NCBI GenBank assembly: GCA_907165135.1
Contig: OU015566.1
Span: 1,550,001 to 1,614,000 of the forward strand
Reading direction: 5' to 3'
Length of the DNA stretch: 64,000 nt
Source of the DNA: Oikopleura dioica
Lineage: Eukaryota; Animalia; Chordata
This document shows, in pieces, positions 1,452 to 47,500 of the stretch. The notes below the pieces were generated by a model. That model worked only from the letters and a program-made list of their open reading frames with translations. It searched no databases and had not been told where the DNA came from. A program made the position numbers and the translations under genes. The stretch's first letter is position 1. Each line of letters starts with the position of its first letter.

Positions 1452-4400
1452 TCATACAACGAAGTCGAGATAGTAGACCATTTGGCGACGATTATTCCAG
1501 ACGAAGAGAGCTTTCTCGCGCATGTTGTATTGCATTTGCACGATATGACTAAAATAAAAAAAATTTCGAAATCGACGAAGAGAATTATTTACTGATAGCT
1601 GTCTGGGTACTCCACATGAATATCTCTTGTTCTTCCGCTGATTGTATCGATCGCGTATCTATAAAAAAGAAAGAAGAGCATTCTTTTGAAAGTTTACCGA
1701 ATAACACCATCTTTCTTCCCATCAGGCTCGGTCGCATAGAGGACACCACACATCATGAAGATATGCCCTATCTGCTTTGTCGTCGTAGAAGTTTCGATAA
1801 TTTGCTTGACGCTCAAATCCTTAGGGTCGAGGAGCTGAAGCTTCAACCGCTCTTCTTGGTGGTAGTCTTGTGGGCTTACTGACGGGTAGATCACCTTAAT
1901 TTTATTTTTTGAAAACCAGTAGGTAGATGAAAATCCTACCCAGAGACCCCGTTGATCAACCGAAAGCGTAATCCAACTATGCCCTTTCCACGTAAAAGGC
2001 GAGTCAGAATCGTAAATTGCGTCGGAAAGATGTGTCCAGGCGACCATCTCCTGATCCTTCAGGTTGTAACTCACGATATTGCTGAAAACAGAAATTCTTC
2101 TCAATAAGCTCATTTTTTCCTTACCGGGTAAAAGCCCGATTGTAGTAGAAATGCTCATTGTAGACCACATGACCAGTTCCGATGTAGTAGAAGGGGAGAG
2201 TGTGGCGTTTTCGATACCGGAGGTCCTTAAAATGATTAAGAAAAGGGATGAAGAGGGGGGAGGGACAAACCCTGAATCGTTTGGTATCAGAAAACTCCAG
2301 AAGATGATTTCCATAGTAAAAATTCGCGACATAAACGGCTCTTCTTCCACTAGAACTTTTCGGCTTTATTTCGAGATGATCATTTATAAATTTTGAAAGA
2401 GAGAAAAAGTGGTATCTTGAAATGGGAATGATCAATTAGACGGGTAGGAAATCATTCAAATAAATCTCTCATTAGGACGCCTGTGGCGGTATAAGCGAGC
2501 CGCCACCGGATCTCATGGATCATCTCTCGCGCACTCTGAGTTCCTTTGGATCCATCATCCACGCGCCTTCGCGGCGACCCCATGTGTGGAAAACTTTTGC
2601 CTGTCTTCGTGTTTTACAGACAATAGAAGCTAAAGAATCTCTTATTTCCGACTTTTTCGAAAAAAGGGAAGTCTAAAAGATAATCTTCTAATGATAGCCA
2701 AGCTTAAAATTTATGATTTTCGAATCGAAAATTTTTCGATACCTACCTCCTTATTTCAATCAAAATATAAATCAAGTCTTTTGTAAAACAAATCCTTTCT
2801 CACATTATTCAGCGTCCATGTGCAAAGGCTGTTGCTGATTTCTCGCCGCGACTTGTCATCTCGTTTCCTTTTCGTTTGTGACATCACTTGAGTGATTGGT
2901 TTTGGTGTTGTTAGGAGAAGCGTTGTTGGTTTTGAAGTTGGAATGGAAGTTGTTGATTTTCGCGTCGTTGTAGTTATAGTTGTTTTCTTTGTTGTTGTCG
3001 ATGTTGTCGTCGTTGTCGTAGTCGTGCTTGTCGTGGTGGTTGTGGTCGTTGGTTTCTCTGTTGTTGATGTGGTTGTCGTTGAAGTGGTCGTGGATGTTGT
3101 TGTCGTTGTTGTTGGCTTCTTTGTTGTCTTGGTTGTAGAAGTCGTTGATGTTGTTGAAGTGGTCGTTGTTTTGATGGTTGGTTTTGAGGTTGTTGTAGAA
3201 ATCGTTGTTGTTTTTACAATTTGAGACTCTGTTGTTTCATTATCTTCAATGTTTAATCTCCTCGTCGTAATTTCATTGTTTTCATGAAATTTGTTTACTT
3301 TACAATCGGTTGACAAAATTATACGTTCTTTTGAGTGATTTTTTAAAGCGAAATAGATTTTGCTAACCAATAACTGAGCTAAGCGAAACATCCATTTCAA
3401 ATAACTTTGAAGTCATTTTCGGCTGATCCGTCGAGTTTTTCTCCTCGATCCTTGGCATTGTTCTCGTCAAAATGCCAATTGTTGCCGGCGCAGCTGGAGG
3501 ATTTTTGGTAGGCGTCACGATTTCCGGCTCTTCAAAAGGGATAACGGTTGTGGTTTCTGTTTTCGTTGCTGTTGTTGTTTCAGAAATCGGCGTTGTTGTT
3601 TGCTTTTCTTTTTCAAATCGCGTCATTTCTGGAAGCTCAAAAACAGCACTTGTCACGGATTCTTCATTTTCCAGCGTCTGAAAAAAGAGGGATGAGAAAA
3701 ACTTCCGTCGAACCGGATTCGAACCAGTGACCTAGAGATAACTGCTAACCCTCTACAGTCTCCCGCTCTGCCAACTGAGCTATCGACGGGCGGAAGTGCT
3801 AATTTTATGAACCATTAATATACAAGATATCGGCTCGACACAATTTCAGGAGTTAAGAAGATTTGGAGTGACAAAACCTGGAGCAACCGAAATTTTCAAA
3901 CCGATTTTTAAGGGTGTTAGGGGCCTCCCGGCCCCCTCAAACCCTGGCGAAAACCCGGCTTTGGGCCCGGGCTTTCTTTTGACCGAGTCAGATATCCTTA
4001 ATTATGACTTTAACACCCTTAAAAATCGGTTTGAAAATTTCGGTTGCTCCAGGTTTTGTCACTCCAAATCTTCTTAACTCCTGAAATTGACTTTTGCCCA
4101 AGATATCATATTTAATCCCCCTCTACAAGATTTAAAGAAAATATGTTTATTTTTTTGTCAAAAAGAAGTTCCAGAAAATGCCATAAATAACTCTTGAAAC
4201 AGCGAAAAAACATATTTATGGTTCCTGCTTCAAATATTTAATACCGTTGTTTCCGCCGTAGTCGTAGTCGTAATCTGCTCGTTTTCGTCAGCTTTCTGCT
4301 TCCGCGCGCTTTCAACGAGCTCTTTGAACTTGCTCGACTTGTTCTCTTCCTCGATGATTCCGACAAGATTGTCGAGTTTTGACTTGAGAACGGATGTCTT

Positions 4401-4869
4401 GTCCAGAAGGTTTCCGGAAAAGGACTTTTCCATTTGGACCATGGCGAGGACCATGTGGCTCATTGTGTCGTGCATTTTGTTGAAAGAAATTGAGGTCTTG
4501 AAATCTTCGAGCTCGGTTAACACTTCTCGTAGTTCCTTTTAAATGAGTTTTCAAATATAATATAATATAATATAATATTGGATTTTGTCTTCAAACTCAT
4601 TTCTTGATCGTTGCACTGTCGTCCGGCAAACACTCTGTTTTCACTGGAGGATCTTCGCATGTGCACTGACAGTCGCTCCCAGAAGATATCGCTTCGACGG
4701 AAAAGAAGATTTGAAAACCCTTGCCATTCGGGCACGGCTCTCGCGAATCTTCATGCAATTTGCATCGGCATTGGCAATCACTCCCAATTCCATTCGATTT
4801 AAGGGCGTCAACGGATATCTGAATCGACAGTTTTCGACTTTTTCCCATTAGTTTAATATTTAAGCTCAT
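1452..4869 (-). CDS. OLFML2: Olfactomedin-like 2 (photomedin-type) secreted glycoprotein, multi-exon; 5' end not resolved
   Basis: N-terminal CQCRC...[17 protein letters not shown] motif as in OLFML2A/B, then a coiled coil (4245-4520) and a Thr-rich mucin stretch (2890-3240). Olfactomedin domain motifs [47 protein letters not shown]; stop at 1452-1454. Confidence 0.85.
3704..3789 (-). tRNA. trnY-GTA: tRNA-Tyr(GTA) with 13-nt intron, nested in an intron of the olfactomedin gene
   Basis: CCGTCGATAGCTCAGTTGGCAGAGCGGGAGACTGTAG[AGGGTTAGCAGTT]ATCTCTAGGTCACTGGTTCGAATCCGGTTCGACGGA. Acceptor stem pairs, A and B boxes present, T5 Pol III terminator immediately downstream. Confidence 0.95.
3841..4089. 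mobile_element. Foldback/MITE-like element with 79-bp perfect inverted arms
   Basis: 3841-3919 is the reverse complement of 4011-4089, around a 91-bp GC-rich spacer. No clear TSD. Confidence 0.8.
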
Positions 4870-12786: not shown

Positions 12787-15700
12787 TCAAAGGCTAGTGC
12801 TTTGCCATACCGAATTTGTAGCTCCACAGCAATGAACGAACTCCTCAATATTTCCGACAATCGTTCTGCTTCTTGTCCCATCAAGTTTCGCATAAAACAG
12901 ATCATTCACGAAGAAAAAAGAGTATCCATCATCGCTGCCTTCGAACGCAGCTTTAATTCTGCTTGAATATCGCAGTCCTGGAATCCCGAGTCTCCGAGTT
13001 GAAATTCTTTTCACAATTCGATTTTCCTTCTCATCGAAAATTGAGATGAAGCGGCCAGCGATCAAGTAGGTGTAGCGGCGGTAGTCGTCGTTTTTACCTG
13101 TTCTTCGGTTGATGGCTGCAGTAAGTCTAGTTTATAAGATTATTTTTGAAACTCAAATCAGCCCTTTCGGCTCGGGGTGAGTTTGGTTTTCATTAAGAAA
13201 AAGATTCAAAATTCATACGATCGAAAACGCACTATGCTTAATATTTTGAAGACAATTATGGTTTTTCAACATCAAATTCGGCCGTTATTACCTCATATTT
13301 TTTGGAAGACCCAGTTCTGTTATAGACTTTGGAAAGCCGGGGAGAATTCTATTTCCATTGTACTCCCAATATTGAGCTCCAGAAAAGAATCGGACATTAC
13401 CAGTCGACCAAGGAAGATTCAAACCATCTAAACATTTTCAGATCTCCTTTCAGAGGAAAAGAACCTGGGACCATGTAAACCGCATCAATATGCGAAGGAA
13501 GTCCAGCCCAGTAAGATTCGACTTGAAGAGGTCCTCGCATTGACCATTTTTGATCATAAAAATGATGCTCTCCCGTAATTCGCCACAATTCACGACCCTT
13601 GAAGATGAATGTCTCGGATCCCCATTGAAGAATCGAATCAAAATCGCCATCGCAAAGGGAGTTATCATCGTAATTCGGTCTCTAGAAATCTTCAACGAAA
13701 ATTCCGTGTCATTTTTTACCTCGTTGTCGTCAATGTCCGGCTTATAGGTAGTTCTTGATCTTGTTGTCCATCTTTCTGTGGTGGTAGATCTCGTTGGTCT
13801 TGTCGATTGTCTGGTAGTCGTCGTTTCCATTTCCGGGAATTTCGTCGGATGAGTCATCCTTGTCGTCGTTGTTGGCCTCGACGTCCCCGTTGGAGGGCCG
13901 TAGAGCTGTTGAATTCCGTAAATATCATCCGCCGGCATTTTGAAGTTCTTCGTGAAATGGTACGACGGATACATCACGGCTTCTGGATTATTCGAGTGCC
14001 CAAGACCAAGGCTGTGTCCAAACTCATGAACTGCGACTAGAAAGAACGAGTACTCCCCGCCATCGCAAAAGCCCCACTCTCCATCGTTATCATAATTATC
14101 CGTTGTCGCGCACCAAAGAAGATTGTCCGTTCGACCTACTGTTGTGCAACTACTGTAACTGTTTGATTGAAAAATGAAGGGAAAATGGCAGCGTTTTCCA
14201 TTCGCATTTCCTCCTATAGCATCGTTTGGGCTGAATAGAAGTCAGGAAAGGGGGAAATAATGGGACTTACTGGGCGGGGCAAAAGCCATATCTATCCTTG
14301 TCCTCGTATCTTCGATCTGGACTGCACCAGAGATACCCATCTGTTCTCCCGTCAGTTGTGCAGGAATGATAAGTCTTGCCCTGAAAATCAAAAGGGAAGT
14401 TACAAGCTTCTCCTTCCGCATTTCCGCCATATGTATAAAGCGATCCTTCTCCACAAAATCCCCATTTTTTATCTTTGTCATAATCGTACGTCAGCGAGCA
14501 CCAGGTAAAATCCGTATTTTTGTACTTCAAACAGCTTCGGTGCTCGATCCCGTCTTTTGAAAACGGAAACTTGCAGTAGTAATTTCCTCCTTCCAGATGT
14601 TTCCCGACAGCCTTTGTGATTCTTCCTTCCCCAAGCGTCCAAAATTCATCCTCGTCAAAGTGCGCGTCTCCTTCGAGATCATTTGGGTAACCAGGGTCGT
14701 TGAAGAAAGCATGGGCGAGGGTTCCATGTTGCCCGTCGAATGGATAGCCATCCCAATGATCTCCGCGGCCGAATGAGATTTTGATATCGGCCGAGTCGTC
14801 TGCTGGGCCGAGATTGACCGGGCGAAGGTTGGCGACTTTCTCCCACTCGTGGAAAGCTTTGTCTACTGTATCATCCTGGATCTCGATCGGGAGATCATTC
14901 GAGTAACCGAACATTGAGTAAGAAACTGTATTGCCTGGCCAGGCAGGGCCGCCGATCTGGTACTTTGCTGGACCAGTGTTTTTCGAACGACTTTGATTCT
15001 GACTTTCGAAATCGGGTTTTCCGCATCTCGGTTTTTCAAGAACTTCCATCAGCTGTTGATCCAGTATCCCAGTTTCTCTCAAACCATATTGCTTTTGAAT
15101 TTTTTTAACTATCCCTGGAATCGAATTTTTAGCGATTTGAGCATTCTTCTCTGTGTAGCCAAATCGCTGAGCGAAATCAAGGAGGACTTCCTCTTCCGAA
15201 AATGATTTTGAAGAAATTCTTCCTGGCGGCTCGATGTTTTTAAAGTGTTCCATGCTTCCAGGATTCAACCGGCCTCTCTTTATGTGAATCTCATCTTGCT
15301 TCTCTCCTGGCGGACCAAGATGCCCAAAATGAAGCTGTTTCGGGACCCAGTTTGGCAGGTCTCTGTTTCTAGCAGACATGGCGATCGGACCTTTTCCCGA
15401 CGACCGAAAGTAGTTTGGCAAAGTCTTCATTTTGTCCTCCAGCAGAGAAACTAGCTCATTTGTGAGGGATCTGTCCCTAGAATCAACAGAATCGGCAACA
15501 CGACTGATTTTTTCAGAAAGCGAAAGTTCATGAGGAATTCTAGCGATGATTTGGTACTGCTCAAAAATCAGCTGTTTTTCCGTCTCGGAGTAGTTTTTGA
15601 TCACTCTTGAAGCCGAAACCCCTTTAATTTCTTATCACTTTTCTCATCAAATTTTTCTACCTGGAGCACTCGGCTGCCACTGACTATTTATGGGAACTTT

Positions 15701-18745: not shown

Positions 18746-19321
18746 ATATGGTTCTTCATTGAATCTTATTAAAATCGCCAGTTCGGGGGAGACGCAATTT
18801 AATTAGCCAGGACGCGAGCTTTTCTACAGGGGCAAAATAACAACAGTATAATTGATTTCGCGCTTATTAACTTTCTCGGGAACTAATGTAGAAAAAAAAA
18901 CGAAGGTTTCTTGTAGAAATTTTGATGATCAAAGAACCATTCCTGTAAAACAAATATAAAGAATAGGTAAGAGGTCCGTCCAATACCAGTTTCCCATTTT
19001 CTTCTTAGACGATTCGACATAAATTGTCCATTTTCCGAGTTTCGTAAACGAACTACATGCGATCCGATGACATGCGACAGACTACACGCGTAAATCTGAA
19101 AATACGTTAATCAAAAAACGGCTTATTTGGACAATAAGAAAGACGCTTGAAAAAAAAAGAAGAAGAAAGAAACCGCAGGTTCCGCCAGAACAGACGCCGC
19201 AAATCAATGTTTATGAGCACAACCCACTCATATTTATTGAACCCAAGTTCTGGGCTCGCAAACCTGTGCAGAAATCTGAGTCAGGGTCCTAGTCTGGGGC
19301 CAAGACTGTAGGCTTGGAAAC

Positions 19322-19455
19322 CTGTGTAGAAAACCTAACTCAGGGTCTGATAGAGCTGTGACGAAAAGCCGCGAAGCGGCTTGTTTAAATACGAAGCCGC
19401 CTGTGCGGCTTTTCGGTTCAGCTCTTTCAGACCCTGACTCAGGATTTCTACACAG
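19322..19455. repeat. Short palindromic dispersed repeat, copy 1
   Basis: 29-bp inverted ends CTGTGTAGAAAACCTAACTCAGGGTCTGA with 3 mismatches; internal hairpin AAGCCGC-GAA-GCGGCTT. Confidence 0.75.
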
Positions 19456-20171
19456 ATTGCCGAGCTCAGATCAAGACCCCTTAGAAAGACTTCAGGGAGA
19501 CTTTGTCTGTATTTCTTTCGTAACGAAAAATTCTCGATTGTTCTTATTTTTTTAAATCGCCTAGAATCAGGGATTTGTGTTTCTCGTCGCACAAGATGTT
19601 AATTTTAGCATGTTTCAAATCTGGCACTTGTGAGATCCGGATCTGAAGCCGAGAGGCATAAATCCATCAAAGCACCCGATCAACAAACAATTCAATATTC
19701 TCGTCTTTTCTTCTCATTATCCGCCTTTTTATCGGCGACAAAGACCGATTTTCGAAGCGCAAATATGAAAATAGACAAGTGCGGTTGACACTTACACGGT
19801 TTTATGCTTGATATGTTTCTCAAATAACACAATTTTACAAGTTATAAGCTAGCAGCAGCCTCTTGCCTGTCACTGAAGCCGTGACTAGTTGATGAGTTTC
19901 GAGTCAGATGACGAATATTGCCAATAACTCTGGCTGTCTGCAAAGAATAAGGCTGAACAGTCCATTGACATCTGACTTCTCGAAACGCATCATCTACTTA
20001 AGGCTCTGGGGCAGGGTTAATTGCGTAATGGAGGGTTCGATTGAGTTTGAAGTTGAACTAATGTCTCTCAAATTGTCGCTAGAATTACTGTACCTCAGCA
20101 GAACTATCGTTTAAATTTTAATAAAAAGCTAATACTGGCATTAACTTGGCTCTTGGCTCCAAACCGTTTGA

Positions 20172-20243
20172 AGAAAACCTGACTCAGGGTCCTGAAATAA
20201 AGGCTTTTCCACGTAGTTTTCGAGACTCTGAGTCAGGTTTTCT
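20172..20243. repeat. Short palindromic dispersed repeat, copy 2
   Basis: 20-bp inverted ends AGAAAACCTGACTCAGGGTC / GACTCTGAGTCAGGTTTTCT. Confidence 0.7.
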
Positions 20244-20519
20244 CCAAAGGATGCGGAGCCTCGACTTGGCTTGAATCATAGAATTCTCTTTGAAGACAGT
20301 TTTTATTGCCAGAAAAGGCAATATAGTTTTAACGCTTTATTATAAATGGTATCGCGCCATATTTGCGCGGAATGTGAAAACAAAGGAAAGCCGATCGTAA
20401 AGGCCTTAGAATCAACAAAGCTAAAATAAGTTACATAATTGTCAGGCCTTTTTCAGTCCTCAAAAGTTCAATTATTAAAACACATTCCTAAGGTACCAAT
20501 AGGCTCGGCAATCTGACTC

Positions 20520-21983: not shown

Positions 21984-24900
21984 TTATTGCGACAGTCCCA
22001 ATTTCAATGAATGAATTTCGCGATCAACAGCATCCAGTTCAATTTCAAGCTGATCCTTTCGTTGTCTCGCTTTATGTCTGCTTGCACCATCAGTGCCAGA
22101 ATCGAGCATGCGGAGGGAGCGAGAAAGTTCGGAGCGTTTTTGTTTCATTGATTTTAATTCGTGTTCCATCGAGTCGTATTGTTTCAGACGGCTGGCGAAG
22201 CGGTTTGCTACAGTATTTACTGAAAGAAGATTCAATTCTGTGCTCTGCGATCCTGTCTGGAAACCTGAGTCAGGGTCCAAAAAGCGGCTTTTCCAAAAAA
22301 AAGCCGCAAAAATCATTGTCAAACGGTCCCACGCGGCTTATCCCTTCAAGCATTTTCAGGACCCTGACTAAGGTTTCTACTCAGGTTTTTGACATTTTCT
22401 ACCTTGATTTTCAGGCCAAGCATCAGAAGTCACAGAATTCTCCCGTGGTGATCGTTTCGGGCTTCTCGTCGCCAAGTCCCAGTTCGAGTGCGATTTCTGA
22501 ACAAGTTTTCATTTTTTAATTACAATTTTCTAACAGTGAGTCCAGTCGAATTTCGCTGAGAAGTTGATCTGGTCGACAATCGAGAAATCTGAGAAAGATT
22601 GGAAATTGACTTCGTTTTCGACAAATTCGTCCGGATCGAGTTGCCAGTAGTCGTTGTTGTTTTCGTCGAGCGGCGGCTTTCGGCGAGCGAAGATAGGGAC
22701 ATTCTAGAGCCATATCGCGGAAGATAATTTGGGACTTCTTGCTGCTTTGGTTTCTTTGGGCTGCCAAGTTGACGATTTGGGTATTTTGGAGTGGAAGGTG
22801 AATTGAGGCTCAAGTTGTGCATCGAAACTGATGATGAAAGATCAAGCCTAGATTGAAAATACAGTCATTCTTACGAATCTGTTTAGTACCTTGGAGACCA
22901 GTAATTTGATCCGCGCAAGTCTTCGCTTTCGTAGCTTGAATCGTTCGAAATTAGGTACCCGCTGAAGTCAGAATGGTCATTTTTGGTCATCAATTTTTGT
23001 TGTTCTTTCAGCCCAAAACTGATTAGGTACACCAGGGACTACTTTTTAGTCCAAGAAAAAATAATTTTTTTTTTGAAAAATTTTCCACGTGACCATTTTC
23101 TTAGGAATAAATCATGTTTTTTGGCTCCCATTTGTAACCCCATCCCACCCCATCTTTGAAATAGGTACAGATCGAAAGAGCGTAAAAAACGCTTTCCAAA
23201 TATGTTATTCATCGAACGGCCAGAAGCGGCCGAAAAATTCTAGAGCCAAAAGAAACCTGAAAATTCAAAATTTTCGTCGAGCCCCGGTGTTCGAATCCCG
23301 ACGATGACACTTTTTTTCGGAGCGTATTTATTCTGTTTTTTCTTCAAAAAGAATACTTTTGGACCGAAAACTGAAAAAATTGACATCTTGAGGTCGCTAG
23401 AGAGCATTTCCAAAAGAAATTAATTCAGAATAACTTCTTAATCTTCTAAATAGTAGAAATTAAGAAAAAAAAAACACCATAATTTACAGAACCGGAAAAA
23501 ACACCAGGGAAAAATATTCAAACGGGTGCGGGTGGGGTTGGGGAAAGGGCTTCTGTCTTCTCATCCCGGCCAATGTCAAGCCCATTTTTAATTGAAAGCC
23601 AGGGAAGGGGGCTGAGACGGCCCTTCGGGCCGTCAAGCCCATTTTTAATTGAAAGCCAGGGAAGGGGGCTGAGACGGCCCTTCGGGCCGTCAAGCCCATC
23701 TTTAATTGAAAGCCAGGGAAGGGGGCTGAGACGGCCCTTCGGGCCGTCAAGCCCATTTTTAATTGAAAGCCAGGGAAGGGGGCTGAGACGGCCCTTCGGG
23801 CCGTCAAGCCCATTTTTAATTGAAAGCCAGGGAAGGGGGCTGAGACGGCCCTTCGGGCCGTCAAGCCCATTTTTAATTGAAAGCCAGGGAAGGGGGCTGA
23901 GACGGCCCTTCGGGCCGTCAAGCCCATCTTTAATTGAAAGCCAGGGAAGGGGGCTGAGACGGCCCTTCGGGCCGTCAAGCCCATTTTTAATTGAAAGCCA
24001 GGGAAGGGGGCTGAGACGGCCCTTCGGGCCGTCAAGCCCATTTTTAATTGAAAGCCAGGGAAGGGGGCTGAGACGGCCCTTCGGGCCGTCAAGCCCATTT
24101 TTAATTGAAAGCCAGGGAAGGGGGCTGAGACGGCCCTTCGGGCCGTCAAGCCCATTTTTAATTGAAAGCCAGGGAAGGGGGCTGAGACGGCCCTTCGGGC
24201 CGTCAATCCCATTTTTAATTGAAAGCCAGGGAAGGGGGCTGAGACGGCCCTTCGGGCCGTCAATCCCATTTTTAATTGAAAGCCAGGGAAGGGGGCTGAG
24301 ACGAAAGCCAGGAAGGGGGCTTCGGGCCGTCAATCCCATTTTTAATTGAAAGCCAGGGAAGAGGGGCTGAGACGGCCCTTCGGGCCGTCAAGCCCATTTT
24401 TAATTGAAAGCCAGGGAAGGGGGCTGAGACGGCCCTTCGGGCCGTCAATCCCATTTATAATTGAAAGCCAGGGAAGGGGCTGAGACGGCCCTTCGGGCCG
24501 TCAATCCCATTTTTAATTGAAAGCCAGGGAAGGGGGCTGAGACGGCCCTTCGGGCCGTCAATCCCATTTTTAATTGAAAGCCAGGAAGGGGGCTGAGACG
24601 GCCCTTCGGGCCGTCAAGCCCATTTTTAATTGAAAGCCAGGGAAGGGGCTGAGACGGCCCTTCGGGCCGTCAAGCCCATTTTTAATTGAAAGCCAGGGAA
24701 GGGGCTGAGACGGCCCTTCGGGCCGTCAAGCCCATTTTTAATTGAAAGCCAGGAAGGGGGCTGAGACGGCCCTTCGGGCCGTCAAGCCCATTTTTAATTG
24801 AAAGCCAGGGAAGGGGGCTGAGACGGCCCTTCGGGCCGTCAAGCCCATTTTTAATTGAAAGCCAGGGAAGGGGGCTGAGACGGCCCTTCGGGCCGTCAAT

Positions 24901-26667
24901 CCCATTTTTAATTGAAAGCCAGGGAAGGGGGCTGAGACGGCCCTTCGGGCCGTCAATCCCATTTTTAATTGAAAGCCAGGGAAGGGGGCTGAGACGGCCC
25001 TTCGGGCCGTCAATCCCATTTTTAATTGAAAGCCAGGGAAGGGGGCTGAGACGGCCCTTCGGGCCGTCAAGCCCATTTTTAATTGAAAGCCAGGGAAGGG
25101 GGCTGAGACGGCCCTTCGGGCCGTCAAGCCCATTTTTAATTGAAAGCCAGGGAAGGGGGCTGAGACGGCCCTTCGGGCCGTCAAGCCCATTTTTAATTGA
25201 AAGCCAGGGAAGGGGGCTGAGACGGCCCTTCGGGCCGTCAAGCCCATTTTTAATTGAAAGCCAGGGAAGGGGGCTGAGTTTTGAATACTCTCTAGTGCCA
25301 CCAAGATGAATTTTTTTCGAATTTTTGAAGTCAAAATTGAATTTTTGAGGGTTGAAATAGTACTGTTACAAGGTTTTAAAAAGCCAATAATGTTTTAAAA
25401 AAACCTTACTTTTTCGAATTTCGATGACCTCTAGTGACCCCAAGATGAACTTTTTTTGAGTTTCTGACCTCGGAATAAAATTTTTAAGGGTTGAATTAGT
25501 ACTTTCACGTGTAGTTAAACCGCAAATAATGTTCTGAAAAAAACGCATTTTTTCGATCTTTGATGACCTCTGGTGACCCTAAGATGAACTTTTTTCGAAC
25601 TTTTGACCTCGGAATCGAACTTCTAGGTACTAAATTACTATAGTCCCAAAGTTTCATCGAAAAAGGGATACGTTATCGACCACTTATTTTTTTCAGCGGG
25701 TACCTAGTTCGAAATCATATCATTTTCATAATGCGATTGCTCGTTTCTCCGGTACAGCTCAAGTTGTCTCTCCAAATTTCGAATTCGCTCTTCTTGTTCA
25801 CCGATTTTTCTCTGTTGCTCGATCCGCTGGTCGGTCTGATTCTTTACCTACGGAAAAATTACAGTCAAAAAACTGCTTTGAATCCTACCTCATCAAAAAG
25901 CTTGACGATCAGCTTTTCTTCTCGCTCTCGAAATGATGCTTCTTGCTCCCGATAAGCCTCGGCAAAAGCCTTGTCTTGGTTCAGAATTTGTTTGTAGAGA
26001 CCTTCAACTTCTTTTTCTTTCGCAGCAAGTCGATCTTTTGTATGCGCCAGGTCCAGTTCTAGCGCTCGAGAAGAGGTGTTCTCCAGCTTTGATTTTGTCA
26101 TATTTTCTTTAACAGAATTTTTACAATAATCAAATTCTCATTTTTACCTTTTTGGAAATTGAATTCTTCGAGTATTACTTTTTCTGATCTGCCCTCGGGC
26201 GTGTTCGGCCTCGTATTCTCCAAACTGTCTGATTCGTATTCACTGAACAACGCGCGCTCAGAATTATGTCGATAACATTAATTTATTAAAAAGAAAATAA
26301 TCAGAAGAAAATCGATCTTTTTAGCTGACGTACTTGTATTGCAGAATTGGAACATCTGCCAGATTTTCACTTATAGGTTCATCCATAATTAACCGAGGAC
26401 CTGAAAATTATCGTCTTCGGCCAAAGAGGTTCTGTTCTTACTTGTGTTGGTGGAAGAAATGCCACTTTCCCGCTCCATTCTCGTCAAAATCTCGTCCAAA
26501 TCGCCTTCTTCCTGAAATCTCTGAAGCTCTTGATTCGCCGCCAAATCAAGAATTATCCCGTCCGTCATTTTCAACTTGTCTGATTCGCCCTCGGGCGTGT
26601 TATCCTCTGCTCGAGTGCCCATCGAGCGCTCACTTGATATCCTCTCTTCAGCTTTGGACTCGGCCAT
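21984..26667 (-). CDS. Uncharacterised coiled-coil protein; one exon is interrupted by a 2.75-kb TIR element (disrupted allele or new intron)
   Basis: ORFs 26389-26667, 25865-26101, 22520-22822 and 21984-22322 splice into one frame through canonical introns (e.g. 25849-25889, 22253-22402). The frame ...ENDMISN / DSSYESEDLRG... is continuous across the empty insertion site. The C-terminal helix loosely resembles MPHOSPH9/enkurin-type tails (weak). Confidence 0.75.
22260..22377. repeat. Short palindromic dispersed repeat, copy 4, filling most of a 150-nt intron
   Basis: GAAACCTGAGTCAGGGTCC / GGACCCTGACTAAGGTTTC (1 mismatch in 19) inside intron 22253-22402. Confidence 0.75.
22952..25706. mobile_element. 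2755-bp non-autonomous DNA transposon with 15-bp TIRs and 9-bp TSD (Mutator/Merlin-like TSD length)
   Basis: TSD GTTCGAAAT at 22943-22951 and 25707-25715; perfect TIRs TAGGTACCCGCTGAA / TTCAGCGGGTACCTA. Three ~140-bp subterminal repeats at ~25280-25630, with a partial inverted copy near 23385. No transposase ORF. Confidence 0.9.
23575..25278. repeat. 57-bp minisatellite, ~30 units, each with an 8-bp-stem hairpin
   Basis: Unit TTTTTAATTGAAAGCCAGGGAAGGGGGCTGAGACGGCCCTTCGGGCCGTCAAGCCCA; hairpin GACGGCCC-TTC-GGGCCGTC; few variants (AAG/AAT, single-G indels). Confidence 0.98.
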
Positions 26668-27713: not shown

Positions 27714-30700
27714 CTAGAAGAGGAGGAATGAAGCGAAGAGGGCTAGAAGTGTGGTGAAAACTCCTGTTGCTGCGGCCGCACTTGTTGTTGATGTTGAGTG
27801 GGTTGTCGATGGTGGAGCAGTTGGGTTGACGCAGTTGTCTTCGCCTGAATTTGTGGTCCAGAGAATGCTGGAAAAATGTAACTTTACCTTCAAGGCAAGG
27901 TCTTTGGTGACCCTCGTTGCAGTTTTCTTCGGAGCAAGTCTGCTTGCAAGTTCCATATCGTCGACCTTGAGAGTCAATATCGTCGAGCTCGTAGCAAGTT
28001 GGATTGCCAAACATCTCTTTCACGATGAATGGGGAGCAACCCTTGTAGATTGACTCGATGATAGTTCCATCTGCGTTCTAGAAAAATTTTCATAAATTGG
28101 AAGATAATTCTTTTTTCTTACGTAATGAGCTTCTGTTCCAGTGTAGCAGCTAGCGCAGGCGTAACATGGACATTCAATCGTATCCACAGGTGTTTCTCCG
28201 CAGCTTGGGAGGCCGTTGACGGTTCCGTCTTCGTACTCGTTGTAGTTGCAAGCGTAGCAGCTGTGGATGTGCTCGTCCTGGTCGTCCTCGAATTTTTCGG
28301 CGACGGGCGTCATCTGTGCGTTTCCGAAGCTGTTTTCGTAAGAGATCTGGCAATCCTTGAAGTAAGTTTGACCATTGGCACCAGTGAAGTCGAAGCACTC
28401 TTCTGTTGCCTTCGATCGGGAGCAGCCTCGTTTGAATCGGAACTGGTGGACGCCATTCGAGTACCAATCGGTTTCGATTTCAGACATGCAGAAAGGCTGT
28501 TCATTGTCGCAGACTTGAATGGCAAGTCCAGTTGGATCGTCGGAGAGACATCCGGGATCACCGAGACCGATAGTGTTGTTAAACTGGTCGACAGTGACGT
28601 CGCACTGGTAGCAGCTGATAACATCACATCCTTCATCATATCCGGGAATGCAGGGTCGCTTGTGCTCTTCGTTGCAGTTTGTGCCCTTGCATGTCTCTTT
28701 GCAGACGCCAAGAAGTCGTTGTTCGTCGGCAGGATCGTTGATGGCACCGCATTCTTGGCCGAGGAACTTGTCGTTGAGCACGAATGAGGAGCAGCCCTTG
28801 TGAACTTGTTCTCGGTAGATATCGCCGGAGTCCTAAAAGAAAAATAAGCCGTGTTAAAATTTATCTTAACTTACAAAATGAGCGTTGGTTCCAGTGAAGC
28901 AGCCTCTATTGGCATAAAGAGGGCAGGCTTTATCAGCATTGCCGATAAGCGCAGGTTCATCACCACATTTACTGTTTCCAGAAGTATCTCCATTGTCTTG
29001 CTCGATGAAATCGCATGTGTAGCAAGAGTCTTGAATGTGCGCTGGGTCAGCGGCGTCCTAAAAGAAAGTTCTAGAAAATATATCCTAGACCTTCTTTACC
29101 TGGTATTTGAGAGCAGCGTCAGTCATTTCCTTATTGCAACCATTGCCCTCGCAGTCGCTGAAGCAATCTTTGAAGAAGTATTGACCGTTACCGGTGACAG
29201 AGTCCACGCATTCTTCAGCAACTTTCTCAGCAGCACAGCTTCGCTTGACTTTGTAGTATTGCTCACCTAAGATCTGTTAGAAATTGATATTTTGATGAAA
29301 ATAACCTGTAATAAGCCAGTCAACAGCGATTTCAACCGAGCAAACTTGAGCATCCAGAGGACATGGGAGAAGGTAAGTGTCACTTGGAGTGTCAGTGAAG
29401 CAATTAGCATCACCGATACCGATGGTCTTGTTGCTAGAATCGACAGTAGTTGTGCACTGGTAGCAGGAAATCGATCGCTCGGGAGTTCTCGAGTTGCATC
29501 CATCAGTGTTGCAGGTCTCTTTGCAGGTCTGGTATTTGTCGGTTCCGAATTCCCAATCGTAGCAGGGGATGTTTCTGTTGTCAAAAGTAGAGCAGCCTTT
29601 GTAATCTTCTTCGAGTTCATTAAGACCCTCGGTGTGCCAAGAAGCAGCAGTGAAGCAAGCGGCATTCGCGTAAACTGGGCACTCAACAATAAAGCCTTCG
29701 TTTGAAACATCTGGCTTTTGGCATTCCTCTCGAGATCCACCGACAATTGCCCCGAACTGATCCTTAGCGTATGTGCAAGAGTGACACTCGAGCGTTTCAC
29801 CGTTTCTCGCATCAAAGAGAGACATGACGTAATCAGACTCATCACGATCATTACATTGCTGTCCAGCGCAGTAAGACATGCAATCCTTCCACTGCATCAT
29901 GCTTGTCTCTCCGACAGTGCATTCTTGTGGTGGTGGTGCAGCTTTTGGAGCGCATCGTCGGTCCATTCGGACAAGCTGCTCACCCTTGAGGTACCAATCA
30001 ACAAGCATTTCGGTTCGGCACTGTCCGGACTCGCACTCGACGAGCATATCGGCTCGTGGATTGTTAAAGCAAGCTTTGTCGCCCTGGCCGTAAACATTTC
30101 CAAGATGATCAAGAGTGACCATGCATTCGTAGCATTTGAAGCTGTTATCTGGCTCTGTTGGTGGAGCATGGATGGAGTCAAGGTTGCAATTGGCAGAAGA
30201 GCAGGTTTCTTTGACAGCGTTGAAATTGTCGCCACCAGGGAGAGCGCCGGACATGTATTCAGGGTTGTTATCATCATCAAGTCTAAAGGAAGAGCAACCC
30301 TTCCAGACTTCTTCCAAGTTTTCGCCATTGTAAGCATGGCTGTAGCTACCAGTGTAGCAGGCAGATCGAGCATATCTGGGGCAGCTTCCCTTGAGAGAAG
30401 AGCTTGGCTCCCAGCAGTTTCTGTTTCCGGAAACAGTCCCATCTTCATTTTCAAGGTATTTGCATTGGATGCACTCGTCGATATCGGCGTAGTCTTCCTC
30501 GTCGTCGAAAAGAGAGCCAATGGACTCAAGATCGTTGTTACAACCTTCTTCCTGGCATTGAGTGAAGCAGTCCTTGTATCGGAATCCGGAGGTTTGAGAT
30601 GCACCAGTGATGCATGGTTGGTTGGTATTGGTAGGAGCAGGGACACATTTTCGTCGAATCGTCGTTTGTTGATCTCCTCGAGCGAACCAGTCGACAAGAA

Positions 30701-33700
30701 TCTCAGTCTCGCAGGTGTCGGATCCGGTGGGACACTCAGTCAGAGAAAGTCTATCTGCGTTGTCGAAGCAATTAGGGTTGCTATTTCCAATGAGATTTCC
30801 TTGAGCATCAATAGTAGCAGAACACTCAACGCATCTGTGCTTAGTGCTGAGTTGTTTGGTGTTACAGTTGCTCGAGCCACAAGTGTTCTTGCAGTTGGTA
30901 TGGTCAAGTCCGGAAACACTGGTGCTAACACACTCATCTCTGTTGGTATTGAGTGGGAATGGAGAACATCCACGGAAGTCCTCTTCGATTTCTTCACCGT
31001 TACCAGAATATGATTTGTGGAAAGAAGCAGCACTGTAGCAAGCAGCATCGGAGTATTTGGGGCAGACCCTTGATGGAACTGCGGATGGGTTGCTTCCACA
31101 GTCTTGGTTACCATTGACGGTTCCTTCATCTGATTGAGTGTAGGCGCATTGTCTGCACATAGCAACATTTCCAGTTGTGAACTGATCCTCGATTTCTTTA
31201 ATTCCGCTGTTGCAGCCGGCGTTTTCAGTTGGATCACACACGGAAGAGCAATCTTTGTACTGAATCAACTGGGTAGATCCGGTGTAGCAAGGAGGAGCGG
31301 TCTTTTGAGTAGTGCAGCCTCGGATCATTCGGTAAGTCATTTCACCCTTTGCGAGCCAGTCGATTTCAAGATCGGCCTTGCAGAAGTTCCCCTCGGGACA
31401 CATCTGGAGGAACTGAACATCTCCTTCAAAACAGGCAGTATTGCCAGATCCGAGAACTTCTCCTTCCTGGTCAAGAGTTACAGAGCAAACTTGACAGAAA
31501 CTTCCATCGATGGGACCTGGGTTCTCGCCGATGGGATCGGGAACGATGTGTTTGTCGTTACAGTCATTGCTGTTACATGTTGTCTTTGAAAGGGAGTATC
31601 CAACGCCGTCGATGATTGAGGTGACTTTTTCATCCTCTTCAAGGACGAAAGCGGAGCAGCCCTTGTAGGTCTCTTGCTTGAGAACGTTATTGTAGTTGTG
31701 GTTGGCGCTTCCAGTGAAGCAAGCGTTAGACATGTAGTTTGGACAGTCAGAAGAGTCTTTCCATGTATCATCAAGGCATTCCCTATTTCCATTAACAGTT
31801 CCATCATCGAACTCAGTGTACTTGCAAGTAAGACACTTATCAACCTGTCCACCATTGTACAAGTCACCGACTGAGAGGTCATTGTTACAGCCACTTCCCT
31901 CGCATTGAGCGATGCAATCTTTGTATTTCAAGAATTGTGAGTTTCCAGAAATACACTGGCCATTATTGTTGTCAAGTTGGGCTGGGCCACAAGATCGTCG
32001 AATCTGAGCAAGCTGGTTTCCATTTGGCGCCCAATCGATGATCATCTCATCTTGGCAGACACCGGGACAGGCTGTAAGGGTGTTATCGGTGAGTTTGTCG
32101 AAGCAAGAAGGATCGGAAGCACCAAGAAGCTCACCAGTATGGTCCATGGTAGCAGTACAGACGTGACACATGTTGTCTTTGTTGAGTGTGAGCTCGTCGG
32201 TGTTGCAGTTGTTGCTGGTGCAGGAGTTCTTACAAGTAGTGAAAGAAGTTCCACCGCTGAAAAACTCATAGCAGGAATCATTGTTTGTGTATTCAAATGG
32301 AGCGCAGCTTCTGTGTTCATCTTGAGCAATCCCGGTTGAAACCTCATGTCGGCCAGCAGCGTGAATGCAAGCAGCATTTGCATATCGAGGGCATGTCAGA
32401 GTTGGAACATTGCTTGATCCATCAATACCTTCGCCGCAATTGGGAAGTCCATTGCCATAACCACTATCATCAACGATGTACTCGCAGGTGTAGCAAGAAT
32501 CAACAGCGCCGACATCGTACTTATCAGAAACGGATTCAAGGTCAACATTACATCCGGATCCCATGACAGATGGATCGCAGAGGGCGGTGCAGTCTTTGTA
32601 CTGAATGTAAGAAGATGATCCAGTAAAGCACTGAGTTTCAGTTTTTTGAGTTGTGCACTTTCGATCCATAGTGTAAATCATTCGACCCTTTGGATCCCAA
32701 TCAGACAGAAGCTCGGTTGCGCACATGTCGTCTTTGTTGGGACAGGTCTGTGCGTAGCCACGGCCATCAGCGAAACAACCCCGGTCGCCAAGACCAAGAG
32801 TCTTGTTTGCACTGTCGACGGTTTCAGAACATTGCTGACAAATCGCCCAATTACCAGAAATAGGCATCGGTGGATCAGTGACTTGCTCGTTGTTGCAGTC
32901 TCGACCACCGTTGCAGGTATTTTTACAGTAGCCTTCGAAGCTGTTTGGAATTTGGTCACATTTTGGCGCGGTTGGTGATCCTGTATCGATCGCGAAAGTC
33001 GAGCAGCCTCGAGTGGATTTTTTCAGAAGAACTCCAGTAGCGTCGTTGAGACTTGTGTAAGAAGCAGTGAAGCAGCTTGCCGAAGCGTAAAGTGGACAAG
33101 CGACGCTGTCGACTTTGTTGGTGTTGTCAGGACAGCTCGGGTTACCATTGACAGAGCTAGAGGTCTCCTCGTAGTCGCAACTTTTGCAGCTTTGCTGAAT
33201 AAAGTCTTTCTGATCTTCAGACTGAGGGAAAAGAGCAGCGACGCCCATGCCAGTATTGCAGTCATCGCCATCGACGTCGGGATCGCAGTTCTCATAGCAA
33301 TCCTTGATCTGGTAGGCGACACCACCAATTGAGCCCTGGAGGACGCATCCGTCCTGAACAAGATCTTTCTTGACGCAGCCTCGTCGGATGGTGTAAAATG
33401 GTTCGCCGTTCCATGGCCAGTCGACTTCCATGTCAGTCTGACAGACGTAGTCACCGTCGGCGGGGCACTCCTCGGACATGGCATCATCAGCATCGTCCCA
33501 GCATCGGATGTCGCCAGAGAGGGTATTGTTGAATTGGTCGACGGAAACGGAGCAGGTCTTGCAGCTGTTTCTCTTGGTGATGATCTTGACGTTGCAGTTG
33601 TTGGTCTTGCAGGTCGATTTACACTCGCTGTAAGCGCCGCTATCAGTGACACCGGATTCGCACTCTTGGATGATATCGTCAGTTGCTCCCTCAGCAAGAT

Positions 33701-34364
33701 CGAATCCAGAGCAGCCACGATGATCTTCTTCAAGGTAGTAATCATTTCCTTGCTGTTGCTCGTAAACCCATTCGTGTGCATTAAAGCAAGCTCGGTTAAG
33801 GTATTCTGGGCACTGTCGAGATTCGATTCCAGGATCTTCAGGATTCTCGTAGCAATTTTCGTTGCCGACGACATTCCCGTCACTGAGCTTGACATAGCTG
33901 CATTTTCTACAGGAAAGGTCGGGTTTTGCATCAATTAGGAGGTCAGGAAGCATGTCAGTGTACATCTCAGCGCCGTTGCAGTGGTTGTTATTGATGGTAG
34001 GGTCGCATCGGCGAAGACAACTTCGGTAGAGAATAGGAGGGTGGGGAACGATGTTGTCATTTCCTCGGCAAACGGTGAAGTCATCGGCTTGGGGGTACTG
34101 GATATCGTTCTGAGGAACGCACTCTCGCTGGAAAGTAACCAGCTGCTTTCCATTGAGTCCCCAATCGTATGAGACGCTCATTCCACACTTATCGTTTACA
34201 TTTTGGCATTGCTTTTGGTAGTCTTGGCTTGGATTGTCGATGCAGTCAAGATCTTCAAGGGGCAGGGGTTCCCCCATGTGATCCAAACGCGTTCTGCATT
34301 GATAGCAGGATAATGCGTTTGACACAGTGGCCAGCGAGGACCAAAGTGCCAAATTTAGACGCAT
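27714..34364 (-). CDS. Giant (~2,100 aa) GPI-anchored protein of 18 tandem Ly6/uPAR-like Cys-rich domains (9 A/B pairs)
   Basis: Signal peptide MRLNLALWSSLATVSNA. Repeats start CxxC and end C-x(3-8)-CN as LU/three-finger domains do. A 1695-aa first coding exon plus 4 short exons, then a Thr/Ser stalk and hydrophobic tail (AAAATGVFTTLLALFASFLLF*). Confidence 0.88.
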
Positions 34365-44516: not shown

Positions 44517-47500
44517 TTAGTTTTTCCATTTCTTTTGCCATGGTTTCTTTGAGCTCCATTTGCCCTTGGAGGTTTTTGTTGCTCGTGAACTCGAAGCGGC
44601 GCAAGAGTTGTCCGGCTGGAGAGTGAAGCCATCGGGGCAGAAGCAAACGCCGCCGTTGATCGTGGCTTTGCAGTTCTCGCAGTTGTCCGCGTTGGCGTCA
44701 CAATCGGCGACTCCGGCGGAGTTGTCGACGTTGAGCTCGGTGTGGACGCGGATTTGGGTGCCGGAAGCAGTGCTGAAAATGATTTTAGGCATTGTTTTCA
44801 TTTTTTCTCTTTTGATTTTGAATAGAAACTTACTTTGAGCCTGGGCAAGAAGCGTCACTACACGATCCGGAATTCAAGTCACAGAGCGAAACCATGCAGT
44901 TGAAGTAAACAACATCGGAGGCCAAGTCACCAAGAACGGAATCAGTGACCATCAATCGGAACTGATTAGTGCCAGACCATCCTTCGGAAATAGAAACGAA
45001 TCCTTCTTGACCGGATGTGAGGCAACCGTCAGTGACAACGTCGATGACATTGCCGGCATTCTCGTCGTCGGCGTTGTAGGCGTCAGAGAACCAGCATCGG
45101 TTGGCTTCAAGCTGGAATCCCTGAAAATAGAGCTTGTTAAGATTGATTCGAAAAATAATCTTTTACCTCTGGAGCGACCATTCCAAGATCAGAGATTATC
45201 GAGCTGCTGCTGATGACTTGATCAGTTGGAGCAACGGTATGATAACCAGCGTTGGTGTATTTGGCGACCATGACATTTCGTCCTTCGACAACATTGTCCA
45301 TCTTCTGCGCAGTGGCGAGTTCTGTGTAGCTGCTCAAATCAATTGGATAAGAGCATTCGAAGCTGCTCCAGAACTCGGCGACATCTCGCTGGAAGAAGTC
45401 AGAGACCATCTTGTAGCCCTGGATGCCGGCGGTGTAGGTGACATGAGTGGAGTTGTATGAAGTAGAGGCACCGCATTCGGACTTGCTTCGGTTGATTCGG
45501 AAGACGTATTCTGCTCCAGCATCGAAACCGAGTCGACCTCGGCAGTTTGCATCAGCAGCAATGGAGGAGAAGTCATCGACCTGCTCGCCGACGACATGAA
45601 TGTCCTTGAGCATGAGGCCAAGCTTGTTAACGACACACTTGTTGACGCGCATGGTAAGGCCAGCGCCATCGCAAGTTCCGGAAATGTAATCCGCGACATC
45701 GATGCTTTCAACTTCTGGAACCAAGCTCATGTCGCACTCGCAGCCGGAATCGCCACAAGCAGAGAAGGATGAAGCGTCACAGCTTGAGAGAGTCTCGCAG
45801 ACAGGAGCAGCTCCGACAGAGGTGCAACCAGTGATGCAGACATACGAGCAATCTGGACTGAAGGCCATCTTCTTGTCGAATGGAGAGCCTTCTGGTTTGG
45901 CATCGCAGACAGAAGTGTCGGCTGGCGGAAGGAACTCGACGACAGGGGATGTCCAGCTGATACCGGTGTCTTCTGCGACGGAAGGATCGACAGCGGTGAA
46001 AACGAAATTGGCGCTGACAACGTCACCCTAAAAATTGAAAGCTTGAACCAAAGTTTTAAAGTTTAATTTTTACCTTGACGACAAGATTATCGAAAATACT
46101 TCTTCCATCACCAGGAGTGAAATCAACTGAAGTCAATCCATCTAGATTCGGACTGGCAGGGCCGGAAGTAACGACCTGATCACCAAAAGTGACCTTGATG
46201 TTCCATGGAGTAGCGACGAAACCAACAATGGGCATGATCTCACCATTGGTATCCTTCATAGCGAAAGAGAACTTCTGGTAGAAATCGAGGCCGAGAATCT
46301 GTGGCTCAGTTGGCTCAGAGAGAACGAGAAGTTCAGCTGGACTGGTGTAGACGACGGCTTCGAGGGCAGCATCAGCGGCAGCTTGCTTGGCAGCGTTCTT
46401 TTCCTCGGCAGTTTCAAGATCGTCGAGTGGAACATCGAGAGCTTCTTCGACCTTCTCGAGGAAGTCTTCGATGGATTCACCTTCAGCGATGTTATCGATA
46501 CCAAGGATGTCAGCGAGGGTTTCTGGCATCTCTGGTTCCTCTGGTGGTGGTTCTGGAGCAGCGGCAATAGCAACGCTCTCGTCAGCAGTGGCGGATGGAT
46601 CAATCTCAGTCTGGGTAGTGTTCATGACATTGTTGACAATGGCACCACCGCTGCCAGCGATTTGAGCACCAAGCTTGTTGTTCGCTTCAGCACCATTAGC
46701 AGTGTTGGAAGATGGATCGATTTCAAAGCCAAGAGTCATGCCTGGAGCATCTTCTTGTCTTCGGTTTCGGAATCGTGGGTTAACATCAACGTTGATGACG
46801 TCGTATCCAAGTGCAGCTCGTCGTTTTCTTCGCTGAGCACCAGTCTCAGAGATGACATTCATGAGTCGGATCTTGCTTGGATCGATTCCGAGAAGAGCAG
46901 CAATGTTGGCAGCGAGGTTACCGTTATCATAGAACTCATCCTCAGTAACTTCAGTCATGACGCCAAGTTCGAGGACAAGAGAAGAAACGACTTCCAAATC
47001 GTATTCGCTTCCTCCAGAAAGGATCATGTAGAATAGCTGATTGTTTCGATCGTGGTAGTTGGCACCACCGTGATTGTAGATAGAGTCAGTAAGTCCTGGG
47101 TAGAAAGATGGATCCGGCTTAGACCAGGAGATTGAATCACCCATGAGAACGGCATTAGTGGCCAATGAAAGCTCGCCATCCTTGAAGAAGTTCAATCTGT
47201 TTGGTCGCTTGGAGTAAAATTTGATGAGGATCTTGCAATCAGCAGGAGCATCAGCGAAGTACCATTTGGCCTTGAGCGGAGTAGTCGACGAGAAGTAGTA
47301 GTCGTACTCTTGACCACAAGCGACAGTGCTGTGAAGTGTCATCAATCGGAGAGAGCAAGCGTAACCGATGCAGCAAGAATGATCACATGGACCGTTGATG
47401 ATGTCAGCGTGACCATTGGCAACAAGAGCAAGAGGAGTCAATCGTCGGCTCATCTTGTCATTGTCCATCATGTCGTAGACGAGATCATAATATCGGAAGT

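Follow-up and report, generated by a model that had tools for sequence, protein, structure and literature searches.

A recent DNA transposon insertion in a coding exon that probably truncates a constrained coiled-coil gene of Oikopleura dioica

What becomes of a gene when a transposon lands in one of its coding exons, in a host group noted for relaxed splice-site rules? The question is raised by a 64,000-nucleotide stretch of the larvacean Oikopleura dioica (assembly GCA_907165135.1, contig OU015566.1, positions 1,550,001 to 1,614,000 of the forward strand), which we call the window and number from its first letter. A 2,755-bp element with perfect terminal inverted repeats (TIRs) and a perfect target-site duplication (TSD) occupies positions 22952-25706 of the window, inside exon 5 of an eight-exon coiled-coil gene read from the minus strand (21984-26667). 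A preliminary description of the locus, made from the letters alone, offered two readings: a null allele or an intron with GA-AG ends. Here, we report that the first is favoured. A recent transposon insertion probably yields a truncated protein, and with it a loss-of-function or strongly hypomorphic allele of a constrained gene. We favour this reading because all seven related contigs show the site empty, the TSD and TIRs are perfect, the element opens with an in-frame TAG and the best splice signals keep that stop; the GA-AG intron found no support.

The borders of the element were read from the sequence, and its ends were compared by script. The TSD, GTTCGAAAT (ATTTCGAAC on the gene strand), is present at 22943-22951 and at 25707-25715, the two copies being identical at 9/9 positions. 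The TIR TAGGTACCCGCTGAA at 22952-22966 (plus strand) is the exact reverse complement of 25692-25706 (minus strand) over 15/15 bases, and the similarity of the ends is lost beyond base 15. Within 64 kb and at a spacing of up to 10 kb, a 15-nt inverted repeat directly flanked by a 9-nt direct repeat has a chance expectation of about 2e-6. The locus thus carries the inverted repeats of a class II transposon together with a TSD that is single-copy at empty sites. Family copies with the same termini at other sites were found neither in the window nor in nine fetched loci nor in the JGI metagenome contigs, which together made up the scope of our copy-number searches (the source genome lies outside it). 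The 15-mer TIR has no further occurrence in the 64-kb window, even allowing 3 mismatches; BLAST of the element arms against the window and the nine loci gave no second copy; and the JGI contigs gave 0 matches both for the element ends (degenerate 25-mer) and for the core of the internal minisatellite (25-mer).

The uninterrupted state of the exon is seen in relatives. Queries with the open reading frames (ORFs) of exons 4 and 6 retrieved seven related genomic contigs from seven samples, three of them from JGI (L003, L004, L006), three from ENA (L005, L008, L009) and one from Logan (L007; SRR23998815). All 7/7 contigs, at 71-93% nucleotide identity, are uninterrupted at the site and hold the target, ATTTC(N)AAC, as a single copy. 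They read through as ...GA(A/G)AATGA(T/A)AT(G/T)ATTTC(N)AAC GA(T/C)TC..., and the BLAST alignment stops at 25707 and restarts at 22951, the two segments sharing 9 nt of the contig. The closest relative, L005 (93% nucleotide identity), ends 4 bases beyond the site, and these bases, GATT, are the empty state. In L003, L004, L006, L007, L008 and L009 the exons of both sides lie on one contig. Judged by these comparisons, the insertion is derived, specific to the genome of the window and recent. As the exon is uninterrupted in all relatives, the two halves are one gene; the preliminary description had allowed that they might be separate genes, and this is not so.

The same comparisons bear on the assembly, in which the element might have been misjoined into the gene, or the locus might be a collapsed or chimeric repeat. 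An element so rich in minisatellite sequence is hard to assemble, and an independent copy of the haplotype was not found in public contigs, where exact-protein look-ups with two window ORFs gave no match. Nevertheless, an exact 9-bp duplicate of a sequence that is single-copy in relatives, abutting perfect 15-bp TIRs, is the mark of a transposition event rather than of a misjoin, and we find an assembly artefact scarcely credible.

The host gene was modelled by hand, with translation and tblastn to the relatives as evidence. On the minus strand, exons 1-4 and the upstream part of exon 5 occupy 26667-26442, 26400-26334, 26242-26148, 26106-25889 and 25847-25707; the downstream part of exon 5 and exons 6-8 follow at 22942-22890, 22847-22535, 22496-22403 and 22219-21987, with the stop codon at 21986-21984. 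All seven introns are GT-AG (41, 91, 41, 41, 42, 38 and 183 nt). The upstream part of exon 5 comprises 47 codons, ends in ...YENDMISN and is conserved in L003-L009, and the downstream part (DSSYESEDLRGSNYWSP.) is joined directly to it in the relatives. The insertion falls after codon 249 of 480, leaving an upstream piece of 249 residues and a downstream piece of 231.

The label 'coiled-coil gene' is a fair one: the C-terminal 77 residues are predicted to fold into a two-helix hairpin with a predicted local distance difference test (pLDDT) score of 90. The C-terminal exon is also the best conserved, at 80-92% nucleotide identity versus 66-71% in the rest. Pfam gave no family above threshold for any of the exon pieces, and phmmer with the C-terminal 78 residues against 1.84 billion representatives returned two matches only, both metagenome fragments, and no annotated orthologue. 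Relatives of the gene were found only as environmental metagenome contigs (ENA, JGI) and in the one Logan run. The gene is confined to a narrow lineage.

Selection on the exons 3' of the insertion had been named as a check, and we ran it for both sides, counting codons with a single change between the window and L007 and polarising the changes with L004. Upstream of the element there are 32 synonymous and 9 non-synonymous differences (12 / 0 on the window branch); downstream there are 44 and 4 (11 / 0 on the window branch). These counts indicate strong purifying selection on the host gene. The exons beyond the element are intact and show no decay in the codon comparison, and from this, together with the perfect TSD and TIRs, it follows that the insertion is very recent. 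Read on its own, the intact downstream part would fit a gene that is still functional and one that has just been broken alike and does not discriminate between them. Given such constraint, the sequenced material probably carries the insertion in a heterozygous or polymorphic state.

At the nucleotide level, the gene strand runs ...GAA AAT GAT ATG ATT TCG AAC into TAG GTA CCC..., so that the protein reads ...YENDMISN and meets the first triplet of the element, TAG (25706-25704), as an in-frame stop. Beyond the element it continues as ...TTCTGACTTCAG/CGGGTACCTA (a slash marks a splice position) and then ATT TCG AAC GAT TCA AGC, which reads ISN, from the duplicate, and DSSYESEDL.... The TIR at 25692-25706, TAG/GTACCCGCTGAA on the gene strand, contains a canonical GT donor at 25703-25702. 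Its partner at 22952-22966, TTCAG/CGGGTACCTA on the gene strand, contains an acceptor AG at 22963-22962. These details agree with the preliminary description, which had placed the repeats in the codons ATT TCG AAC, had read the TAG as a stop in frame and had noted CTGAC before the TTCAG.

From this arrangement, we propose the following course. A non-autonomous cut-and-paste transposon landed in exon 5, after codon 249. If the element is retained in the mRNA, translation would end at the in-frame TAG. If it is spliced through its own TAG/GTACCC ... TTCAG/CGGG, 2,742 nt would be removed, and the residue, TAG plus CGGGTACCTA plus the 9-nt duplicate (3 + 10 nt of element and 9 nt of TSD), would amount to 22 nt; the frame would be shifted, the stop would come first and translation would still end there. 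That the canonical GT would keep the stop had been anticipated, correctly. The protein predicted in both cases is an N-terminal fragment of 249 residues that lacks the Ser/Thr-rich region as well as the helical hairpin at the C terminus, and the sequenced allele is probably one of several haplotypes in a polymorphic or laboratory population.

The downstream half might also be expressed on its own. In such a split gene the upstream unit would end at the TAG, and the downstream unit would owe its 5' end to a promoter within the element or to a spliced leader joined in trans to TTCAG and would be translated from an ATG at 22990-22988 or from the next ATG in exon 6. On the minus strand, the frame of the downstream part of exon 5 is indeed open through the element end, from 23038 onwards after a stop at 23041-23039, and the ATG within the element end (22988-22990; MTKNDHSDFSGYL-ISN-DSS...), which bears only on this alternative, is in frame with it; Oikopleura operons, moreover, are resolved by trans-splicing (bioRxiv 10.1101/2023.05.09.539028). 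However, both the promoter and the use of a leader would have to be supposed, and two half-proteins are unlikely to substitute for one, which leaves a split gene very improbable in our view.

A more far-reaching alternative is that the element is removed with the frame restored. To map the routes open to such splicing, every donor starting with G from exon 5 into the element was combined with every AG acceptor near the far end, and pairs leaving an open frame were kept. This enumeration gave 91 frame-keeping pairs. Among them are the two GA-AG pairs proposed in the preliminary description, whose frame arithmetic holds: the products ...YENDIGYLISNDSS... and ...ENDMISGYLISNDSS... were both reproduced. 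Sites were scored with a weight matrix built from 14 hand-checked introns of the window, an automatic census of intron-separated ORF pairs being too noisy for non-canonical counts. On this scale the real donors of the window, by leave-one-out, score 2.0-9.5 bits and the real acceptors -2.4 to 10.2 bits.

The element's own donor at 25703 (ctag/GTACCC, minus strand, as are all the sites that follow) reaches 2.5 bits, near the bottom of the range of real donors, and is similar to two other donors of the host gene (AG/GTAC); its own acceptor at 22962 (TTCTGACTTCAG/) reaches 5.1 bits. None of the donors in frame-restoring pairs scores above about -0.5 bits. The GA donors at 25716 (at/GATTTC) and 25710 (tc/GAACTA), both in frame with the acceptor at 22962, score -9.8 and -3.6 bits; a GG donor at 25704 (TA/GGTACC), 1 base ahead of the canonical GT, scores -5.9 bits and would leave exactly 21 nt; and an exonic GT at 25755 (ct/GTACCG) scores -0.5 bits. 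Within the element, the gene strand also offers numerous strong donors and acceptors, all downstream of the TAG. By these scores, nothing in the sequence itself favours a frame-restoring route. Rescue by skipping all of exon 5 was considered and rejected, since the exon is 194 nt long and not a multiple of 3.

The introns of the window provide a local standard. All 16 that could be defined are GT-AG, 13 of them 37-46 nt long and 3 of them 91-183 nt; two of the 16 come from a spliced comparison of a matrix metalloproteinase (MMP) gene of the window with vertebrate MMP2. No non-canonical intron was shown among these 16, a count for which GT was sought first and which is compatible with a non-canonical rate of 10%. 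GA-AG introns are nevertheless documented in O. dioica, where the GA is preceded by a highly conserved AG and followed by A (PMC7072748). Compared with these introns and those of Eurytemora affinis described in the same work, the proposed donors are alike in beginning with GA and pairing with AG; unlike them, the candidates here read at/GAT and tc/GAA, with the upstream AG absent from both, the first lacking the A as well and the second having the A only.

The alternative can now be weighed. A permissive spliceosome would remove the element from a non-canonical or cryptic donor ahead of the TAG (GA 25716, GA 25710, GG 25704 with 7 added residues, YGYLISN, or the exonic GT 25755) to the acceptor at 22962, making the element a nascent intron or the allele a leaky one, and the frame would be regained through a small gain or loss of residues in a linker that is poorly conserved. 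Each of these pairs keeps the frame open with no stop, the acceptor has a respectable score of 5.1 bits and the exons downstream of the element are intact. GA-AG and GG-AG introns are on record for O. dioica (PMC7072748; bioRxiv 10.1101/2023.05.09.539028), transposon-driven intron gain is listed as proposed for Oikopleura in Table 1 of PMC3443670, and non-canonical introns derived from miniature inverted-repeat transposable elements (MITEs) are described for the larvacean Fritillaria borealis (PMC11282704). However, every candidate donor (-9.8, -3.6, -5.9 and -0.5 bits) falls short of the 2.0-9.5 bits of real ones, the GA and GG candidates would face competition from a better canonical GT 1-13 nt further downstream, the element is about 60 times the typical intron length here and is full of strong internal sites, and it is single-copy among the data searched, hence no introner family. 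We consider a nascent intron or leaky allele unlikely. The two GA donor scores, the missing upstream AG, the lack of a second copy and the 16/16 GT-AG introns leave the GA-AG intron, which had been put forward as an introner-like event, unsupported.

In its boldest form, this alternative would be an intron birth in progress in a chordate: the permissive larvacean spliceosome would already be removing a fresh 2.7-kb transposon, from a GA or GG donor just before the TAG to the acceptor in the TIR, with a scar of 3-7 residues, and the gene would still be functional. We hold this to be unlikely. The context of such a birth would be a host gene with intron turnover between lineages and a MITE-enlarged intron. 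The 183-nt intron 7 (22220-22402, minus strand) contains a palindromic MITE-like repeat at 22237-22388 with arms AAACCTTAGTCAGGGTCC / GGACCCTGACTCAGGTTT, and two further copies of this repeat (19260-19470 and 20155-20260) follow shortly beyond the 3' end of the gene. Intron 7 measures only 41-66 nt in the relatives L001, L004 and L007; therefore, a pre-existing intron has been enlarged by a second, different small element, and this is probably the earlier introner-like event implied by the preliminary description. In the lineage at 71% identity, exon 6 is divided at window position 22760-22750 by an additional GT-AG intron of about 44-50 nt (L004:1440-1500, L009:750-800 and L003 at about 4425-4470), an intron that the window and L007 lack. 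Intron presence in the host gene thus varies between lineages.

Known systems place the locus more closely. In maize Ds, dSpm and Mu alleles and in Caenorhabditis elegans Tc1 alleles, splice sites near the ends of the element serve to remove part of it from the pre-mRNA. The present case is similar in being a DNA transposon in a coding exon whose termini offer a usable donor and acceptor, so that a short footprint is possible; it differs in that the footprint here, 22 nt, is predicted, has an in-frame TAG first and would bring no rescue. Introners, whose insertion gives rise to new introns, are transposon families described from Micromonas, dinoflagellates, fungi and other groups (PMC11282704, PMC9860276, PMC12130899). 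The element shares with them TIRs and a TSD bordering a sequence within a coding exon, and an aquatic host. Unlike introners, which have many similar and demonstrably spliced copies, it is single-copy in the searched data, 2.7 kb long and mostly minisatellite. The window, the fetched loci and the JGI contigs yielded no near-identical copies in introns of different genes, and the sites provided by the element and its TSD restore no frame, the canonical pair leaving 22 nt and the TAG.

For a second larvacean, Fritillaria borealis, the work of Henriet et al. (2019), as summarized in PMC11282704 and PMC13326754, describes MITE-derived introns that are mostly AG-AC or AG-AT, with less than 10% of introns being GT-AG. 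Both cases concern a larvacean with insertions bearing TIRs and TSDs in coding sequence. The window departs from the Fritillaria pattern: all its defined introns are GT-AG, and the element borders have no AG-AC or AG-AT ends in register. The locus is an exonic transposon-insertion allele, a known kind of event, that does not behave as an introner and lies off the Fritillaria pattern.

A truncating allele thus remains the probable reading, although several points weigh against it. The choice of splice sites is a prediction from sequence, and the weight matrix behind it comes from 14 introns only, with GT donors sought first. The donor in the TIR is only a modest match at 2.5 bits, in-frame donor-acceptor pairs do exist in the enumeration, and the O. 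dioica spliceosome takes GA, GC and GG donors (PMC7072748; bioRxiv 10.1101/2023.05.09.539028). Finally, a homozygous null should be costly in so constrained a gene, which fits heterozygosity or rescue.

What kind of transposon has inserted can be narrowed from its internal structure. An AT-rich left arm of 623 bp and a right arm of 428 bp enclose a minisatellite at 23575-25278 (57-bp unit, 29.7 copies by Tandem Repeats Finder), which makes up about 60% of the element; the same program reports a 139-bp repeat of 2.3 copies in the right arm (25290-25615). Each minisatellite unit contains the hairpin GACGGCCC-TTCG-GGGCCGTC, with a perfect 8-bp stem and a TTCG loop, and two units fold at -49 kcal/mol (z = -3.7). 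Some 30 such hairpins in the pre-mRNA could themselves be a possible obstacle to its processing. Pfam found no match in the short ORFs of the element, and Rfam found no family in it; the element has no coding capacity and is therefore non-autonomous. In the left arm, the segment 23270-23320 of the window holds a tRNA-like B-box (GGTGTTCGAATCCCGACG) followed by a T-run, which neither ARAGORN nor Rfam calls.

As to its superfamily, hAT was rejected, since hAT elements have a TSD of 8 bp versus 9 here and the end TAGGT does not match the hAT terminal consensus. Merlin elements have TSDs of 8-9 bp. Mutator-like elements (MULEs) have TSDs of 8-11 bp, typically 9, with listed TIRs of 18-613 bp, and among them Rehavkus and the aphid Phantom elements carry an internal minisatellite before one terminus, Phantom being reported from tunicates as well (PMC6446971). 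The present element resembles MULEs in its 9-bp TSD and its internal minisatellite and differs from them in its TIRs, which are only 15 bp long and not the tens to hundreds of bp of the long-TIR kind. The 9-bp TSD and the minisatellite would fit a MULE. This assignment is unproven: it depends on the length of the TSD, and Merlin is another candidate. Neither a transposase nor an autonomous partner was found in our searches.

Further features of the window lie outside the host gene. A matrixin with fibronectin type II inserts is encoded, the best named relatives of which are vertebrate MMP2 and MMP9 at about 43% identity, and an olfactomedin domain is encoded as well. One intron of the MMP gene (13127-13291, minus strand) is 165 nt long versus about 40 nt in its neighbours and contains a GC-rich hairpin (ACTCACCCCGAGCCGAAAGGGCTGATTTGAGT); it is possibly another small inserted element. 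Giant single-exon, Cys-rich ORFs built of repeats lie on the minus strand at 29277-34364 (1,695 codons), 46056-49910 (1,284) and 49907-61636 (3,909), with a 46-nt intron connecting the two longest. They bring to mind the house proteins of larvaceans, and the one scanned with Pfam, 29277-34364, had no match. The gelatinase-like MMP of chordate type, these giant ORFs, the clustering of introns at 37-46 nt and the environmental origin of the relatives of the coiled-coil gene all suggest a larvacean host of the Oikopleura type. A tRNA-Leu gene at 3704-3789 (minus strand) stands beside a perfect 79-nt inverted repeat (3841-3919 / 4011-4089, 91 nt apart).

As it stands, the event is an ordinary one, a young transposon that is most likely breaking a gene. 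It is also a clean natural test case, in which the insertion is recent, the empty state is preserved in seven relatives and the gene is under selection, in a host group noted not only for relaxed splice-site rules but also for rapid intron turnover. From the locus one could learn whether such a spliceosome handles a newly inserted exonic transposon as a stop, a footprint or an intron, which has a direct bearing on the hypothesis that tunicate introns arise from transposons. Beyond this, the locus points to an unclassified family of DNA transposons that carries a minisatellite and is apparently still mobile, in a genome very poor in repeats.

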